A DNA stretch of 64,000 nt from positions 910,942 to 974,941 of the forward strand of contig CAJFCJ010000009.1 in assembly GCA_904063045.1 (NCBI GenBank). The letters run 5' to 3'. The notes under the pieces were generated by a model. It was not told the DNA's origin, ran no database searches, and was given only the letters and a program-made list of their open reading frames with translations. The DNA comes from Dimorphilus gyrociliatus. Taxonomy: Eukaryota; Animalia; Annelida. Positions 5,980-40,789 of this stretch are shown here, piece by piece; within the stretch, counting starts at the first letter, position 1; every line of letters begins with the position of its first letter. The position numbers and the translations under genes are program-made.

Positions 5980-7050
5980 ATGGTTGCGAGACGGTTCCAT
6001 TTCAGTGTTTTTAACTTTTCTAAAGACGATGGAATAGTTGATAAACTTTCGAGAAAATATACCGTTATTATCTTCATTTTAGCGTCTTTATTTGTTGTTT
6101 ATATTCAAGTTTCTGGAAAAGGAATTCAATGTCTTTTTCCCAGTCAATTTACGAATTCACACGAACAACATGGTCAAGCTGCATGTCTATATACAGATAG
6201 TTATTATTTCCGTTCAGACAGTGCTATACCAACAAAACATGGTAATAAAAAAACCATTAATAACTACTTTAAATGGTTTTCCCTGATACTTCTCTTACAA
6301 GCTTTCGTTTCCTACTCTCCTAGTATTGTTTGGAAATGTTTCTATAGAGTTTACGGTACAAATCTGGATCAAATTGTTAATTCTGCCGAAAATCTAGCTT
6401 ATACAGAAGAGAATGATACTCGAAAAAAGAAACTTCAAATTATATCTTCAAAAGTACTTCAAAAGAATTCTAGTCTTCTTCCAACAGTCTATGGATTTGT
6501 TAGAAAGATGTATCTTTTAAACGGGATTGGACAAATGGTACTATTTGGGATGATGTTTAATTGGGGTATCTTCAAACATAGATATCAAAAGATAGCTAAC
6601 GATTATAATCTAACGATGAATGAATATTTTCCAAGATCAATTATGTGCGATTATAGTGTAAGAACGTTGAATAGGATTCATAGCTATACATTGGAATGCA
6701 GATTAGCAATAAATGAATGGAATTTCATTATATTCCATATATTATGGGTTTGGCTTCTATTCGTATCTGTTATCACTTTTTTGGCATCTGTTCAACAGTT
6801 TTTCCGTTATATTACCAACAATGACAGATTTCTAAGGGAAAATCTCAAATCGAAACTAAGAGGAAGTTTAGATATTAGAGATTTCAAAAGATATTTATGC
6901 AGAGACGGAGAATTTATCTTGAAGATAATTTCTGAAAATTCGGAAGATGTTGTAACATCTGAGATAATATGTTACATTTGGGACAACTATACCTCTATTA
7001 TTCATGACGGTAAAGAAGGACGAAATATAGAGTTGTTACAAGGTCAATAA
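5980..7050 (+). CDS. Innexin A (intronless tandem copy 1)
   Basis: 356-aa ORF with DDGIVDKLSRKYT, EL1 C..C, YFKW..LILLLQA..SYSP, YFPRS.MC-x16-CRLAINEWN and RDGEFILKIISENS. Confidence 0.93.
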   Translation: MVARRFHFSVFNFSKDDGIVDKLSRKYTVIIFILASLFVVYIQVSGKGIQCLFPSQFTNSHEQHGQAACLYTDSYYFRSDSAIPTKHGNKKTINNYFKWFSLILLLQAFVSYSPSIVWKCFYRVYGTNLDQIVNSAENLAYTEENDTRKKKLQIISSKVLQKNSSLLPTVYGFVRKMYLLNGIGQMVLFGMMFNWGIFKHRYQKIANDYNLTMNEYFPRSIMCDYSVRTLNRIHSYTLECRLAINEWNFIIFHILWVWLLFVSVITFLASVQQFFRYITNNDRFLRENLKSKLRGSLDIRDFKRYLCRDGEFILKIISENSEDVVTSEIICYIWDNYTSIIHDGKEGRNIELLQGQ

Positions 7051-8383: not shown

Positions 8384-9457
8384 ATGGTTGCGAGACGGTT
8401 CCATTTCAGTATTTTCAACTTTTCTAAAGACGATGGAATAGTTGATAAACTTTCGAGAAAATATACCGTTATTATCTTCATTTTAGCATCATTATTTGTT
8501 GTTTATATTCAAGTTTCTGGAAAAGGAATTCAATGTCGTTTTCCCAGTCAATTTACGAATTCACACGAACAACATGGTCAAGCTGCATGTCTATATACAG
8601 ATAGTTATTATTTCCGTTCAGACAGTGCTATACCAACAAAACATGGTAATAAAAAAACCATTAATAACTACTTTAAATGGTTTTCCCTGATACTTCTCTT
8701 ACAAGCTTTCGTTTCCTACTCTCCTAGTATTGTTTGGAAATGTTTCTATAGAGTTTACGGTACAAATCTAGATCAAATTGTTAATTCTGCCGAAAATCTA
8801 GCTTATACAGAAGAGAATGATACTCGAAAAAAGAAACTTCAAATTATATCTTCAAAAGTACTTCAAAAGAATTCTAGTCTTCTTCCAACAGTCTATGGAT
8901 TTGTTAGAAAGATGTATCTTTTAAACGGGATTGGACAAATGGTACTATTTGGGATGATGTTTAATTGGGGTATCTTCAAACATAGATATCAAAAGATAGC
9001 TAACGATTATAATCTAACGATGAATGAATATTTTCCAAGATCAATTACGTGCGAATACAATGTAAGAATGTTGAGTAGGATTCATAGGCATATATTGGAA
9101 TGCAGATTAGCAATAAATGAATGGAATTTCATTATATTCCATATATTATGGGTTTGGCTACTTTTTGTATCTGTTATCACTTTTTTGGCATCTGTTCAAC
9201 AATTTTTCCGTTATATTACCAACAATGACAGATTTCTAAGGGAAAATCTCAAATCGAAACTAAGAGGAAGTTTAGATATTAGAGATTTCAAAAGATATTT
9301 ATGCAGAGACGGAGAATTTATCTTGAAGATAATTTCTGAAAATTCGGAAGATGTTGTAACATCTGAGATAATATGTCAGATTTGGGACAACTACGCTTCT
9401 ATTAAAGAAGTTGAGAAAGATTTTAGTGCAGAGTTAATACAGGGACAATATGCTTGA
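8384..9457 (+). CDS. Innexin B (intronless tandem copy 2)
   Basis: 357-aa ORF at a fixed offset of 2404 nt from copy A. Near-identical to A except the EL2 hairpin and C-tail. Confidence 0.93.
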   Translation: MVARRFHFSIFNFSKDDGIVDKLSRKYTVIIFILASLFVVYIQVSGKGIQCRFPSQFTNSHEQHGQAACLYTDSYYFRSDSAIPTKHGNKKTINNYFKWFSLILLLQAFVSYSPSIVWKCFYRVYGTNLDQIVNSAENLAYTEENDTRKKKLQIISSKVLQKNSSLLPTVYGFVRKMYLLNGIGQMVLFGMMFNWGIFKHRYQKIANDYNLTMNEYFPRSITCEYNVRMLSRIHRHILECRLAINEWNFIIFHILWVWLLFVSVITFLASVQQFFRYITNNDRFLRENLKSKLRGSLDIRDFKRYLCRDGEFILKIISENSEDVVTSEIICQIWDNYASIKEVEKDFSAELIQGQYA

Positions 9458-33616: not shown

Positions 33617-34989
33617 ATGGACACACAACCAAGAAAAATGGAGGAATACCAACACGTGAAGAGTGTAACTGTCATTATATCGTATGTTGTATTTGAAACT
33701 TGTAATTTTTTCTTATTAACAGTTTAAAAATGAATCCTCAACTGTCGATAAGTGGGGAAATATAACAACTTTTGAGGGACGGATCGCTGAAGTAAAATAC
33801 CAACTGGCCGAAAGTGACAAGCGGACGAAATCAATGGACTTTTACAGAAGATGGGCACCCAGAATTTATAGTACTCTGTACGGACCAAAAACTAATATTA
33901 ATCCGAAAGGAAAAGTTGAGTGGATACGGCCATCCGATTGGCCGGATAATGTGCCATTCGGTGATCCGAATAATGGAAGTGAGGTGAAGGATAAGAAGGA
34001 GCCAAAGTCTAAGAAAGGACAGGTGGAGCCCATGTTCCAACGCAATAGACATTCCAAGAAGAAGAATGATGAGAAGGAAGAGAATGACCCAAAGGAAAAC
34101 AAGAAGGAAAAAAAGTTTATTAAAAAACAATTAGAGCCCATGTTTGAACATTTGGTTGAATTATTCGAAGTATTAATTTGAAAATTTCATGATAAATATT
34201 TCACTAATTATTTTTTTTAATACTTGTAGAAAAAATACGGAAAAAGAATCGTAACAAATGATCAAATATCGATGGCTTCAGTGATGGGTGGTGTTGCACT
34301 GCCTAATACAAACTTGCGAGCAGCTGATAATGAGCAGATGAACCAAGGAAATTTTCATAATGTGGCAAAACCTACTGAAGCTTGTCCTGTGAGTACTCAG
34401 GGAGATGACATTCTGTGGAACGTTGAATTACGATTGGATAAAAAGCTAGAATCGTTGAAACCACGCTTAAAGGCAGAGAATTGGAACGTTTTAAACAAGT
34501 ATCTCCGTAAGTTATTAATTTAGATACGAGATATATGAATTCTTTCATCTTATTGCTAAATTTTTAGAGTTCATCACTACAATTTGTGACTATGACAAAA
34601 TGGGTGCTAAGACGGCAGCCTTTGAAATGGAGACATCGATAGATAATTTCCATGCGAATATGTCTTCAGGCATAGCTGAAGAGATGTTGTTAAACATCGA
34701 TGAATGGAAGAGCAGACTATTTAATGTTTTCTGTGGCACAAATATGGCAAATACTGAGAAAACATCCATGAAAATTAAGGAAGAACCGGAAGATTTTGAC
34801 GATTCGGAAAATGGAAAATTATATCAGGATATAAGTATGTTTGCTGAACAAACTGATGAAGTAAACGTTGAGGTTCCAGAAACCGGTCAAGACTATGGTA
34901 TGGATATGGATGCCTTGCCTTCAGACCTTGTATATTCATATATAGACAATACAGGTGTGGAAAATACAGTGTATTTTCCGCTTCTGTAA
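33617..34989 (+). CDS. Uncharacterised protein, candidate divergent NRF1/Ewg-type DNA-binding domain plus acidic tail (copy 1), 4 exons
   Basis: Exons 33617-33664, 33723-34169, 34230-34507, 34569-34989 join in frame. Motif YRRWAPRIY…PKGKVEW.RPSDWPDNVPF resembles NRF1 LRAFIPEML…GRGKPGW…KPIWWPEDIPW (family call is inference). Confidence 0.65.
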
Positions 34990-35736
34990 TTTATCACTTG
35001 ATGAAAGTAGTAATATCACACGAATATGCTTTACCCCTATTATTGAATAGCACTGTCTCTTTAGCAGGCTTCTTCTGTTTTCTCAAACTTAAAAAAGAGA
35101 ACATAGTAAAACATATTTCAACATATATTTATCATTTATTTGAACTATATTGAAGTATTAAAATACTAAGACGACAATTATCGATGATCGATAGTGGGTA
35201 ACAATGATAAACAGCCAGAGGTACAGGAGACAAGGAAGTCAGTTAATTTCAAAATCTTCAAAACAAGTTCAACAAGAAATAGAGATAACTAAATACATTA
35301 TACTGTATGTTTGATATAGTTATGTTTTCTTTTATTCTTATGAGTAATACACTGTTCTAATATCTTGAATTTGTAATCGTGGTTTAAATACAGTAATACT
35401 ATTTTTATATATAGAGAAAAGTAAATAAATGTATCCGACAATCAGGGTTCCTCTATAAAACCATACTTTAACAATTTATGGTTTTTAAAAAATTATTAAT
35501 AATTTTATTTTTTGTAGAAAAATGGATTTGAAAACTAATTTTTGCTCTTTTAAAAACTTTCTAATTTATAAGCTTGAACAGTATTTTTCAAAGCTACGAA
35601 CATATCCTTACTTTATTCATTGAATACTATTTTTACTGCGCAGTAGCTAAATTGCATCGAAAGAGTCAACAATCCCGCGATATCTTATCACCAATTACTG
35701 ATTTTCTTCCTCAAAATTTATACACAACCAAGGGAA

Positions 35737-37127
35737 ATGGAGGAATACCAGCATGTCAAGAGAGTAACTGTCATTATACCGTATGTTGTATTTGAAACTT
35801 GTAATTTTTTCTTATAACCAGTTCAAAAATGAATCCTCCACTGTTGATAAGTGGGGAAATATAACAACTTTTGAGGGACGGATCGCTGAAGTAAATTACC
35901 AACTGGCCGAAAGTGACAAGCGGACGAAATCAATGGATTTTTACAGAAGATGGGCACCCAGAATTTATAGTACTCTGTACGGGCCAAAAACTAATATTAA
36001 TCCGAAGGGAAAAGTTGAGTGGATACGGCCATCCGATTGGCCGGATAATGTGCCATTCGGTGATCCGAATAATGGAAGTGAGGTGAAGGATAAGAAGGAG
36101 CCAAAGTCTAAGAAAGGACAGGTGGAGCCCATGTTCCAACGCAATAGACATTCCAAGAAGAAGAATGATGAGAAGGAAGAGAATGACCCAAAGGAAAACA
36201 AGAAGGAAAAAAAGTTTATTAAAAAACAATTAGAGCCCATGTTTGAACATTTGGTTGAATTATTCGAAGTATTAATTTGAAAATTTCATGATAAATATTT
36301 CACTAATTATTTTTTTTAATACTTGTAGAAAAAATACGGAAAAAGAATCGTAACAAATGATCAAATATCGATGGCTTCTGTGATGGATGGTGTTGCACTG
36401 CCTAATACAAACTTGCGAGCAGCTGATAATGAGCAGATGAACCAAGGAAATTTTCATAATGTGGCAAAACCTACTGAAGCTTGTCCTGTGAGTACTCAGG
36501 GAGATGACATTCTGTGGAACGTTGAATTACGATTGGATAAAAAGCTAGAATCGTTGAAACCACGCTTAAAGGCAGAGAATTGGAACGTTTTAAACAAGTA
36601 TCTCCGTAAGTTATTAATTTATATACGAGATATATGAATACTTTCATCTTATTGCTAAATTTTTAGAGTTCATCCATACAATTTGTGACTATGACAAAAT
36701 GGGTGCTAAGACGGCAGCCTTTGAAATGGAGACATCGATAGATAATTTCCATGCGAATATGTCTTCAGGCATAGCTGAAGAGATGTTGTTAAACATCGAT
36801 GAATGGAAGAGCAGACTATTTAATGTTTTCTGTGGCACAAATATGGCAAATACTGAGAAAACATCCATGAAAATTAAGGAAGAACTGGAAGATTTTGACG
36901 ACTCGGAAAATGGAAAATTATATCCTGATAAATGTATGATTACTGAACCTGGTATGAGGTTAGACAGTATGATTGCCGAAGTTCTTAGTAGGATGGAGGA
37001 TCAGGATATAGACCCTCGTTTTAAAGAAGCGGAGGATTTAAATGCCAGTGAAGACGTTTGTTTAGAAGAGTTTTTTCGCGACCTTGGCTTTCCGGAAACA
37101 AGTATGATGGATTATGATGATGATTGA
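35737..37127 (+). CDS. Paralog of the above (copy 2), 4 exons, diverged acidic C-tail
   Basis: Starts at the second Met (MEEYQHVKR|FKNESS…), same exon structure, intact frame to stop 37127. Confidence 0.65.
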
Positions 37128-37518
37128 TAAGAGAATGCGTGATTTCTAAATCTGTATCTTATCATTATTAATCGAGAGTTGTATTTTTCACCGGAAATTT
37201 GTTTTAGCACTTTAATGAAATTGCAAGTTTGTCTAGCACGTTTTTTCAATGAAAATCTAACAAAAAGAGCACTCACTATAAAACATATTTCAACATATTT
37301 GTCATTTATTTGAAATATATTGAAATACTAATATTCAAATATCTTTGGTTGACAGTGGCTCACAATGAAAAACAGCAAGAGGTCCAGATGACAAGGACAA
37401 TTTGCTTTAAACTGTGATTATTAAAAAATATAATTGATAATTCAATTTATCGTAGTAAAAACAATTTGAAAAGTAATATTTACTCTTTTAAAAACTTTCT
37501 AGTTTATAACTTGATTAG

Positions 37519-37800
37519 TATTAATCCAAAAGGAAAAGTTAAGTGTGAATAATGCACCAGAAGGAGTCAAAGCTCATGTTTGAATTGCATGTTAAATATT
37601 TCACTAAGTAGTTTCTTTTAATAATTATAGAAAGAATATGGCAGATGATATTTTCGGAATCTGTCATCGTCTATTGAAACTTGTGAAAACTACGACAGAA
37701 AGGAATCAAGAGGATGCAAGCTATTGACAGACTTTAATTCTCTGGAACACACATGTTGGATGCGGAAAAGATTGAATGTTTTCCGAATCTGTAACTTATA
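37519..37800 (+). pseudogene. Heavily deleted third copy of the 33.6-37.1 kb gene family
   Basis: NPKGKVKCE*, KEYGR* (vs KKYGKR), ADDIF (vs GDDIL) and RKRLNVF (vs KSRLFNVF) occur in the original order, with stops and large deletions. Confidence 0.6.
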
Positions 37801-38175
37801 ACAATACATGATGAAAGTTGTAGTATCATCGGAATTTGTTTTAGTACTCTAAATAATTATCTGAAAATTAATAACAGAAAGCGCCAACAACTGAATAGTT
37901 TGATATTATAATATTTTCTTTTATTAGTTTAAGCAATACAATTTACTGTACTAGTATATTTTTATGTTATAACCCTGGTTAAATGTTGAAAATTATGTAG
38001 TTTTTCTACAACCTACTATAATTACATTATCTATCTATAAAAAAATATTTTAATTAATTTTTCATAATTTATTTTTAATTGAATTAAAATAAATTTATTA
38101 CGAAAATATTTCTCTTTTTAAAACCACCTAAGGTTTCTTACGCAACAGCTTGAAAAGCCAGTCGAAAGACTGATA

Positions 38176-40789
38176 ATGTCGAAAAGTCAGAAAAACATAA
38201 CATCCTATCGTTGCAAGCGGAATGTAAGTAAAATTAAAACTTTTGAAGGAAGATCTCTAAACGAACTAGGTAAATATAGATATACTGTTCATGTAAACAT
38301 AAAATATATAAACGTTTTTCAACAATAGAAGATGGCGCAGAGCCATTTGTTAGACTTAACGAGGAAAAGCCGCATATAGCGACTCATCAGAACCGAACGG
38401 TAACAAAAGTGACATTTTTCATATAATTAAATTTCATAAATTTCCTCTTCTAGCAAAAAGCTTGTTCACAGAATAACCTACCTGAAGCTTCTTCACAGTA
38501 CAGGTCAACTGAAGCTCTTGATGATGCTTTAGGAAAAAGACCTGTAAACAACCAGCTCTCTGCTGAATGTAGCCAAACAGTAGGTTTCAAATGATTTTAA
38601 TATTATTAATTAATTTAAAATATTTTTTTCTTTGACAATGAAGTCACAATTTGGATTACATCCTGAAATAAATCATAAAATTCAAATAATTTCGAGATAT
38701 ATATCAGAATGTGAAGAAGCCGATTCAAAGAAGATTTTCGGTGATGCTCTCAGTAATTATAGTATTTAAATTTTAAAAACCATTAATTAAATATCATTTT
38801 CTTCTAGCAATTCTGCAAATGGATCCGTTTCCTAACAATCCCCAAACAAAAATCCACTTAGAAGAACTTCTAGAAGACGTAAAGCAGCCAAATTGCTCTA
38901 GGGAAAAATCGAACAAGTGGCAAACTTGGCTAAAAAACTTAATAAAAAAGAAGGGAATCAAATCTGTTGCATCTGGACAACTACAAGGTTTGATATCTTT
39001 TTGCTGATCCTAGTAAAAGTAAATAGCAAGTGATTTATGTGGGCTTTACTCCTTCAACAGAAGGTGCCATCTTTGGTAGAATCCAACAGATGGGAATCCC
39101 ATCTGCTGCCCCGGGACAACAACAAGGTTTGATGTCTTTTTGCTTTTGCTAGTAAAAGTAAATAGCAAGTTATTCATGTAAGCTTTACTCCTTCTTTAAC
39201 AGAAAATGACAGGTTGGGTGGAATCCAACAGATGGGATTCCCATCTGCTGCCCCGGGACAACAACAAGGTTTGATGTCTTTTTGCTTTTGCTAGTAAAAG
39301 TAAATAGCAAGTTATTCATGTAAGCTTTACTCCTTCTTTAACAGAAAATGTCAGCTTGGGTGGAATCCAACAGATGGGATTCCCATCTGCTGCCCCAGGA
39401 CAACAACAAGGTTTGATGTCTTTTTCCTTATGCTAGTAAAAGTAAATAGCAAGTTATTCATGTAAGCTTTACTCCTTCTTTAACAGAAAATGTCAGCTTG
39501 GGTGGAATCCAACAGATGGGATTCCCATCTGCTGCCCCGGGACAACAACAAGGTTTGATGTCTTTTTCCTTATGCTAGTAAAAGTAAATAGCAAGTTATT
39601 CATGTAAGCTTTACTCCTTCTTTAACAGAAGATGTCAGCTTGGCTGGAATCCAACAGATGGGATTCCCATCTGCTGCCCCGGGACAACAACAAGGTTTGA
39701 TGTCTTTTTGCTTTTGCTAGTAAAAGTAAATAGCAAGTTATTCATGTAAGCTTTACTCCTTCTTTAACAGAAGATGTCAGCTTGGGTGGAATCCAACAGA
39801 TGGGATTCCCATCTGCTGCCCCGGGACAACAACAAGGTTTGATGTCTTTTTGCTTATGCTAGTAAAAGCAAATAGCAAGTTATTCATGTAAGCTTTACTC
39901 ATTCTTTAACAGAAGATGTTAGCTTGGGTGGAATCCAACAGATGGGATTCCCATCTGCTGCCCCAGGACAACAACAAGGTTTGATGTCTTTTTCCTTATG
40001 CTAGTAAAAGTAAATAGCAAGTTATTCATGTAAGCTTTACTCCTTCTTTAACAGAAAATGTCAGCTTGGGTGGAATCCAACAGATGGGATTCCCATCTGC
40101 TGCCCCGGGACAACAACAAGGTTTGATGTCTTTTTCCTTATGCTAGTAAAAGTAAATAGCAAGTTATTCATGTAAGCTTTACTCCTTCTTTAACAGAAGA
40201 TGTCAGCTTGGGTGGAATCCAACAGATGGGATTCCCATCTGCTGCCCCGGGACAACAACAAGGTTTGATGTCTTTTTCCTTATGCTAGTAAAAGCAAATA
40301 GCAAGTTATTCATGTAAGCTTTACTCCTTCTTCAATAGAAAATGTCAGCTTGTGTCTAATCCTACGGATGGGAATCCCATCTGCTGCCCCGGGACAACAA
40401 CAAGGTTTGATGTCTTTTTGCTTATGCTAGTAAAAGCAAATAGCAAGTTATTCATGTAAGCTTTACTCCTTCTTTAACAGAAAATGTCAGCTTGGGTGGA
40501 ATCCAACAGATGGGATTCCCATCTGCTGCCCCAGGACAACAACAAGGTTTGATGTCTTTTTGCTTTTGCTAGTAAAAGTAAATAGCAAGTTATTCATGTA
40601 AGCTTTACTCCTTCTTTAACAGAAAATGTCAGCTTGGGTGGAATCCAACAGATGGGAATCCCATCTTGTGCACCCGGACAATATCCCAGTTTTGGGAATG
40701 AGCGACGGAATTCCGAACAAATGATGGCTAGAAGCAACGATATAATACCAACCACAGTCTTGGATATGGAGATGAATGAAACGAATTAG
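38176..40789 (+). CDS. Uncharacterised ~490-aa protein with 12 tandem 22-aa G/Q/P-rich repeats, each encoded by its own exon (17 exons)
   Basis: Exons 38176-38269, 38329-38399, 38454-38579, 38644-38752, 38808-38987, eleven 66-nt phase-1/1 exons (39061…40546) and terminal exon 40623-40789 sum to 1473 nt in one stop-free frame. An upstream exon is possible via the acceptor at 38148. Confidence 0.7.
38972..40681 (+). repeat. Minisatellite, 12 x 142-bp units (76-nt intron + 66-nt exon)
   Basis: Exon starts at 39061, 39203, 39345, 39487, 39629, 39771, 39913, 40055, 40197, 40339, 40481 and 40623 (exact 142-nt period). Units are highly similar. Confidence 0.97.

Follow-up and report, generated by a model that had tools for sequence, protein, structure and literature searches.

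The annelid Dimorphilus gyrociliatus carries, in a 64,000-nucleotide stretch of contig CAJFCJ010000009.1 (assembly GCA_904063045.1, positions 910,942 to 974,941 of the forward strand; hereafter the window, with coordinates counted from its first nucleotide), a tandem array whose 142-bp units each have the make-up of one exon plus one intron. The locus is probably a lineage-specific protein-coding gene of the + strand that contains this exon+intron array, with 17 exons and 486 codons, a reading in which we place fair but limited confidence. The window as a whole is AT-rich, with a GC content of about 31%.

A single strong array was reported by Tandem Repeats Finder at 38975-40681, with a period of 142, 12.0 copies, 95% matches and 0% indels, a unit size and identity of the minisatellite type, and a second repeat scan of the region returned the identical 142-bp register. 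The array was cut into units at the recurring motif AAG/GTTTGAT (here and below, the slash marks the exon-intron boundary). Twelve donors of this form were found, at 38988 and then at 39127+142i, with a spacing of 139 nt for the first and 142 nt for the other ten. They open twelve GT..AG introns, the first of 73 nt and the remaining eleven of 76 nt, which end in AACAG in 11 of the 12 units and in AATAG in unit 10. Eleven internal exons lie between these introns, all of them 66 nt long, phase 1/1 and in frame with the unique exons on either side, and the twelfth copy opens the terminal exon. Units are arranged head to tail, each with a complete exon, a complete intron and both splice sites. The first-pass annotation of this DNA had described twelve such units with AG/GTTTGA donors and YAG acceptors, splice sites and frame kept in every copy including the diverged unit 10, and a twelfth unit running into a unique terminal exon; the repeat scan and the unit dissection bore this out, the last reading frame extending to the TAG at 40787-40789.

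Phase-1 translation of the 66-nt segments gave the peptides EGAIFGRIQQMGIPSAAPGQQQ for unit 1, E[ND]VSL[GA]GIQQMGFPSAAPGQQQ for the core units and ENVSLCLILRMGIPSAAPGQQQ for unit 10, in agreement with the exon phase and repeat peptide proposed before. A period of 142 leaves a remainder on division by 3, so the repeat could be coding only if the 76-nt part is removed. Reading through an array donor yields GLMSFCFC and then a stop, so that the early stop previously suggested for intron retention follows directly from the sequence, as does the suggestion that any subset of the repeat exons could be skipped, or units gained or lost, without a frameshift; nonsense-mediated decay might then act as a brake, as the first-pass annotation had proposed. 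At its 3' end, exon 5 carries a degenerate partial repeat (“unit 0”) of ca. 47 nt that aligns with the 3' part of the unit exon, and the twelfth repeat copy occupies the first ca. 57 nt of the terminal exon. Both are diverged partial units, so that the edges of the repeat lie inside exons. When two units were searched against the whole 77.9-Mb genome (77,897,245 bases, 349 contigs), matches were found only inside the array, which restricts the array DNA to one locus and rules out a dispersed repeat or introner-like mobile introns. A palindrome of 19 nt, CAGATGGGATTCCCATCTG, also occurs in every array exon (in unit 3 at about 39370-39388). Its arms are 8 bp long and its two halves E-box-like, its central base accounts for the F/I difference between units, and it could be a source of slippage, a factor-binding site or an influence on splicing.

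Codon-usage and splice models were built from 264 kb of the same contig (the window and a further 200 kb). Codon-usage log-odds were trained on 50 open reading frames (ORFs) of at least 250 codons; long ORFs had a mean score of 0.20 bits per codon, against -0.02 for 3451 stop-free ORFs of 30-60 codons (hereafter short ORFs). The splice model was obtained by expectation-maximisation on candidate introns between coding-like ORFs, which left 63 confident introns; intron inference by ORF length alone gave mostly noise and was usable after a coding-score filter. The gene model was built upstream from the array, with every part in frame with the next; it comprises 17 exons at 38176-40789 (+ strand), 1461 nt and 486 codons, has its only stop at the very end, and extends further upstream than the first-pass annotation assumed, its likeliest start being 38176, four exons ahead of the exon at 38808. 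The parts of the model, all on the + strand, are listed below.

38176..38269, + strand: exon 1, opening with the ORF's first ATG (38176) and closing in phase 1; donor TAG/GTAAAT, 7.3 bits
38329..38399, + strand: exon 2, placed by frame continuity; 0.23 per codon, 98th percentile of short ORFs; GC 0.48
38454..38579, + strand: exon 3; 0.35 per codon, 100th percentile; donor ACA/GTAGGT, 6.6 bits
38644..38740, + strand: exon 4; 0.155 per codon; acceptor 3.5 bits, 10th percentile
38808..38987, + strand: exon 5; acceptor 9.1 bits; 0.20 per codon; closes at the first array donor, in phase 1
38975..40681, + strand: 142-bp array, with introns at 38988-39060 (73 nt) and at 39127+142i to 39202+142i (76 nt, i=0..10)
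39061..39126, + strand: array exon 1, EGAIFGRIQQMGIPSAAPGQQQ, a diverged edge copy
39203..39268, + strand: array exon 2, beginning ENDRLGG
39345..39410, + strand: array exon 3, in which the frame of the model scores best among all six
39487..39552, + strand: array exon 4, from the unit dissection
39629..39694, + strand: array exon 5, beginning EDVSLAG
39771..39836, + strand: array exon 6, from the unit dissection
39913..39978, + strand: array exon 7, preceded by an intron with a C-to-A change that is a stop in the antisense reading
40055..40120, + strand: array exon 8, from the unit dissection
40197..40262, + strand: array exon 9, from the unit dissection
40339..40404, + strand: array exon 10, diverged, beginning ENVSLCLILRMGIP; acceptor AATAG
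40481..40546, + strand: array exon 11, from the unit dissection
40623..40789, + strand: terminal exon, the twelfth repeat copy plus a unique 33-codon tail; TAG at 40787-40789

Exons 2, 3 and 5, the array exon and the unique tail scored between the 96th and the 100th percentile of short ORFs. The array exon reached 0.30 per codon (99th percentile), and the frame of the model was the best of the six; the unique tail, with a GC content of 0.41, reached 0.20 per codon (97th percentile). By contrast, the 76-nt part of the unit had a strongly negative coding score. Along the gene, GC content alternated between exons (0.28-0.53; 0.28-0.48 outside the array and 0.50-0.53 within it) and introns (0.16-0.32; 0.16-0.22 outside the array and 0.30 within it), exon 1 standing at 0.33 against 0.21 upstream and 0.20 in the following intron, and it fell from 0.41 to 0.26 just past the stop codon. 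The unique introns of the model measure 54-67 nt. Among the 63 inferred introns, the shortest measured 48 nt, the longest about 125 nt and the median 65 nt, so that 76 nt is ordinary; the published assembly of the species, which is PacBio-based and comprises about 78 Mb in about 350 scaffolds, has a median intron of 66 bp (PMC7854359). The consensus donor of the inferred introns was GTAAG[AT], and 8 of the 63 donors had T at +3, GTTTGT and GTTTGC among them. Compared with inferred real donors, the array donor (5.8 bits) stood at the 33rd percentile, and compared with random GT sites at the 93rd; the array acceptor (7.6 bits) stood at the 67th percentile among inferred real acceptors and at the 98th among random sites.

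To put these figures in perspective, 20,000 random genomic 142-mers were treated as tandem units. Some open GT-AG partition was permitted by 86% of them, so an intact frame and intact splice dinucleotides alone prove little; only 0.17% matched the donor, acceptor and coding scores of the array jointly. The partition into a 76-nt intron and a 66-nt exon was clearly the best among the alternative partitions of the unit. Combined with the phase logic, and given that the antisense reading fails (see below), codon usage, GC alternation and splice models fit the exon+intron reading on the + strand put forward in the first-pass annotation.

In the unique part of the gene, exon 3 has two candidate donors 4 nt apart, 38579/GTAGGT (6.6 bits) and 38583/GTTTCA (2.3 bits). 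The frame to exon 5 is kept by the short form of exon 3 together with exon 4, and also by the long form of exon 3 without exon 4. As judged from these frames, the two donors and exon 4 might form a coupled alternative-splicing pair, and exon 4 may be optional.

The simplest and most likely history of the array begins with a 142-bp segment amplified head to tail by unequal exchange. The ancestral segment would have begun in the 3' part of exon 5, spanned an ordinary short intron and ended in the 5' part of the last exon, and its tandem duplication would have been followed by expansion. Because the breakpoints lie inside exons, every copy would have inherited a working donor, an acceptor and, between them, a pyrimidine tract and a branch-point-like TTTAC at about -16, and each duplication junction would have created a new symmetric 66-nt phase-1/1 exon. 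Shared variants form a non-periodic mosaic across units, units 4/5 for instance matching units 8/9, and introns were found to be homogenised about as strongly as exons, in the manner of whole units evolving in concert. In unit 1, exon and intron alike differ at about 11% of positions, and unit 12 is the other edge copy. The diverged edge copies (“unit 0” and units 1 and 12) and the mosaic of variants fit a concerted evolution of the interior of the array.

Splicing of the 76-nt introns would produce a protein with a hydrophilic unique N-terminal part of about 190 residues, twelve 22-residue repeats and a 33-residue tail. The predicted N-terminus, beginning MSKSQKNITSYRCKRN, is basic and not hydrophobic, and the model contains no signal peptide. 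The repeat, rich in Q, G, P, S, A and M, makes up about 55% of the predicted protein, and its composition suggests that the repeats most likely form a disordered, multivalent interaction domain, the length of which would scale with the number of exons. Schistosome micro-exon genes are said (in an account attributed to DeMarco et al. 2010) to be coded mostly in symmetric exons of about 6-36 bp and to yield a secreted product with a signal peptide; with 66-nt exons and the N-terminus just described, the array gene is not of that type.

Homology searches were run exon by exon, not with the joined spliced protein. Pfam gave no match for any exon piece, and no recognisable domain was found by this route in the predicted protein. 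The terminal exon (54 residues: the twelfth repeat and the unique tail) had no phmmer match among 1.84 billion protein representatives. As a positive control, two innexins of the window are present in the same protein collection, which is derived from NCBI and UniRef. A word search with exon 5 found nothing, in a search that covers only proteins of 33-103 residues and is nearly blind to full-length kin; the best score of exon 5 in the ESM Atlas was 0.77, under the lead level of 0.9; searches of the same genome with exons 3 and 5, the tail and the unit gave no paralogue elsewhere; and a metagenome scan for the exon core gave no match. Within the limits of these searches, the results support a predicted orphan, lineage-specific gene, and the Pfam, phmmer, word, Atlas and own-genome searches agree in this with the earlier designation of the gene as an orphan.

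A number of observations weigh against a coding, spliced array. The splicing model is a prediction from genomic sequence, and three of its parts are weak: the coding score of exon 1 (0.035 per codon), the acceptor of exon 4, and the GTTTGA donor, which has T at +3 and a strength under the median. Because the terminal exon had no phmmer match although the innexins of the window are present in the collection searched, the deposited annotation lacks a protein with the C-terminus of the array; repeat masking before gene prediction is a plausible cause, and so is low or absent expression. None of the searches found a homologue. Nor was any signal of purifying selection detected among the units, in exon versus intron diversity or in site classes. 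The comparison of exon and intron divergence, which the first-pass annotation had proposed as a guide to selection, gave a result that is neutral-looking or uninformative: pairwise diversity among units was 0.045 for exons and 0.027 for introns, and 10 of the 12 variable exon sites were non-synonymous and 2 synonymous. Moreover, intact frames and intact splice sites in all copies are about what 95% identity alone would give, at roughly even odds for each (our estimate from the counts), and the twelve copies therefore amount to about one observation, not twelve.

The variable sites are unevenly placed. Eight of the 12 lie within 19 nt of the start of the 66-nt exon (the codons of E[ND]VSLGG; positions 39203-40404 of the window), and about 8% of sites are variable in the other 47 nt of the exon and in the intron. 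Unit 10 carries five clustered changes and resembles the outcome of a single complex event.

Several of these points would be expected if the array were a non-coding or non-functional minisatellite. The gene could end just after exon 5, running into the first unit as far as the stop at 39005-39007 and leaving the array as 3' untranslated region or downstream DNA; or the locus could be an unexpressed proto-gene or relic whose features stem from one ancestral unit copied twelve times, the copies providing no independent evidence of constraint. The collections that hold the annotation of this genome contain no protein with the C-terminus of the array, the units seem to evolve in a neutral-like manner (exon diversity at least that of introns, and the excess of non-synonymous over synonymous sites given above), and each intron has two AGTAAA poly(A)-like hexamers. 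Against this explanation stand the unique tail, which stays open for 33 codons in the very frame required, with codon usage at the 97th percentile and a drop in GC content exactly at the stop, and an exon part at the 99th percentile in the same frame as that tail. Splice signals are also within the normal range, and just 0.17% of random 142-mers equal the scores of the array. We regard this explanation, the main rival, as somewhat unlikely, while giving it real weight.

If the locus is a coding, spliced gene as favoured here, the array could furthermore behave as an exon-number variable-number tandem repeat (VNTR), as the first-pass annotation had suggested. Ordinary unequal exchange would add or remove 142-bp cassettes, and the length of a young orphan protein's glutamine-rich disordered tail would vary between alleles through copy-number polymorphism and between isoforms through in-frame exon skipping, with twelve identical splice-site pairs in competition. 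This stronger proposal is logical but doubtful.

Another possibility is that the array acts mainly as DNA or RNA, its twelve palindromes CAGATGGGATTCCCATCTG with paired E-box-like halves serving as a cluster of transcription-factor sites, as structured RNA or as a source of small RNA. The exon part does fold into an 8-bp hairpin (-22.4 kcal/mol, z = -2.7). By contrast, no Rfam family was matched at E <= 0.1, the fold of the intron is ordinary (z = -1.4), codon usage is at its best in the very part of the unit where the palindrome sits, and the frame and splice logic would be left unexplained; we consider a role of this kind improbable. An array of intron-hosted small RNAs (a small nucleolar RNA or microRNA host) was rejected, since Rfam gave one chance-level match outside the introns (E = 0.21) and the intron z-score was the ordinary one just cited.

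A minus-strand reading of the array, tidy at first sight, gives 102-nt phase-0 exons (QKQKDIKPCCCPGAADGNPICWIPPKLTFSVKEG) that encode a Cys-rich 34-residue repeat, with introns of 40 nt (GTAAAG..TACTAG) between them. This frame is open in 10 of the 11 units, with an acceptor of 7.6 bits and an exon score of 0.19 per codon. However, it is interrupted by an in-frame TGA in unit 7, its donor reaches only 2.5 bits (6th percentile), its intron is shorter than all 63 inferred introns (minimum 48 nt), the antisense ORFs on either side have coding scores of about 0 per codon, and the first ORF has no ATG. The reading was rejected on these grounds, as very improbable, and judged a by-product of the sense repeat; the change that breaks it sits in a + strand intron, as the + strand model predicts. 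An assembly artefact, with the repeat falsely expanded or collapsed, is likewise very hard to credit: nothing direct speaks for it beyond repeats being classic trouble spots for assemblers, and the array, at 1.7 kb, is well inside long-read length, its variant mosaic is non-periodic, which is not expected from copying one read, and the published assembly is PacBio-based (PMC7854359).

The window carries intron-less innexin genes and other animal genes. The innexins, at 5980-7050 and 8384-9457, encode 356 and 357 residues and belong to one 90% cluster. Upstream of the array gene, at 33617-38131, lie two tandem copies of a three-exon gene labelled NRF1-like, 2099 bp apart and 95% identical over 300 nt, and a third copy, decayed and heavily deleted, at about 37150-37850. 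The segment just upstream of the array gene (37890-38131) resembles, at 62%, the segment 35302-35564 upstream of copy 2. The array gene was considered as a paralogue of these NRF1-like tandem genes and rejected as such: a local tblastn of the joined model against the neighbouring 4 kb returned only the 7-residue match I[KT]TFEGR (E = 1.6). This motif is all that exon 1 of the array gene shares with the NRF1-like copies, and it was not counted as family membership.

The novelty implied by the first-pass annotation was overstated, as tandem exon+intron arrays that give rise to variable repeat proteins are documented (PMC2576457, PMC9779670, PMC11462820). In the SmPoMuc genes of Schistosoma mansoni, a 27-bp exon with its introns is repeated up to about 20 times in units of about 1 kb, intronic parts are >94% identical, and the exons encode a repeat domain whose repeat numbers vary between genes and transcripts (PMC2576457). 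The array gene resembles them in being lineage-specific, in its head-to-tail copies of a small symmetric exon with the adjoining intron, and in introns about as homogenised as the exons. The SmPoMuc units, of about 1 kb for a 27-bp exon, are however separated by microsatellites, whereas the Dimorphilus unit has 142 bp and a 66-bp exon; and SmPoMuc is a secreted, glycosylated multigene family with transcripts, whereas the Dimorphilus gene is single-copy, has no signal peptide in the model and is a prediction from sequence.

Iterated exon/intron pairs are also found in the Argiope MaSp2 and flagelliform spidroins, the MaSp2 introns having a mean similarity of 97.6%, and unequal crossing-over has been proposed as the homogeniser (PMC9779670). 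Near-identical small introns and G/P/Q/A-rich repeat exons are common to the spidroins and the array gene. Spidroins, however, are structural proteins of very large size that are secreted, strongly expressed in glands and conserved in their terminal domains, whereas the predicted Dimorphilus product has about 486 residues and no recognisable domain. The human LPA KIV-2 repeat is a coding VNTR of 1-40 units, each of 5.6 kb with two exons, and has a proven phenotypic effect (PMC11462820). There too the unit holds whole exons and introns, and as in that gene, copy number in Dimorphilus would alter protein length in frame. LPA KIV-2 encodes a folded kringle domain and has a proven polymorphism, whereas length variation of the Dimorphilus array is hypothetical.

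The array belongs, then, to a documented class of architecture, and what is unusual about it is the very small unit. To our knowledge, 142 bp is among the smallest exon+intron repeat units known, if it is spliced as modelled. A unit of this size is possible because introns in this genome are of about 66 nt.

At present, the locus is a well-formed gene prediction within that class. If it is spliced as modelled, it indicates that in compact genomes with very short introns, instability of the minisatellite type can act on whole exons, and that young genes would have a simple route to grow modular, low-complexity domains. In the same case, twelve identical donor/acceptor pairs at 142-nt spacing would offer a clean natural substrate for the study of splice-site pairing, and, should exon number indeed vary as proposed for an exon-number VNTR, the locus would provide a test of intron-definition pairing when all sites are identical.

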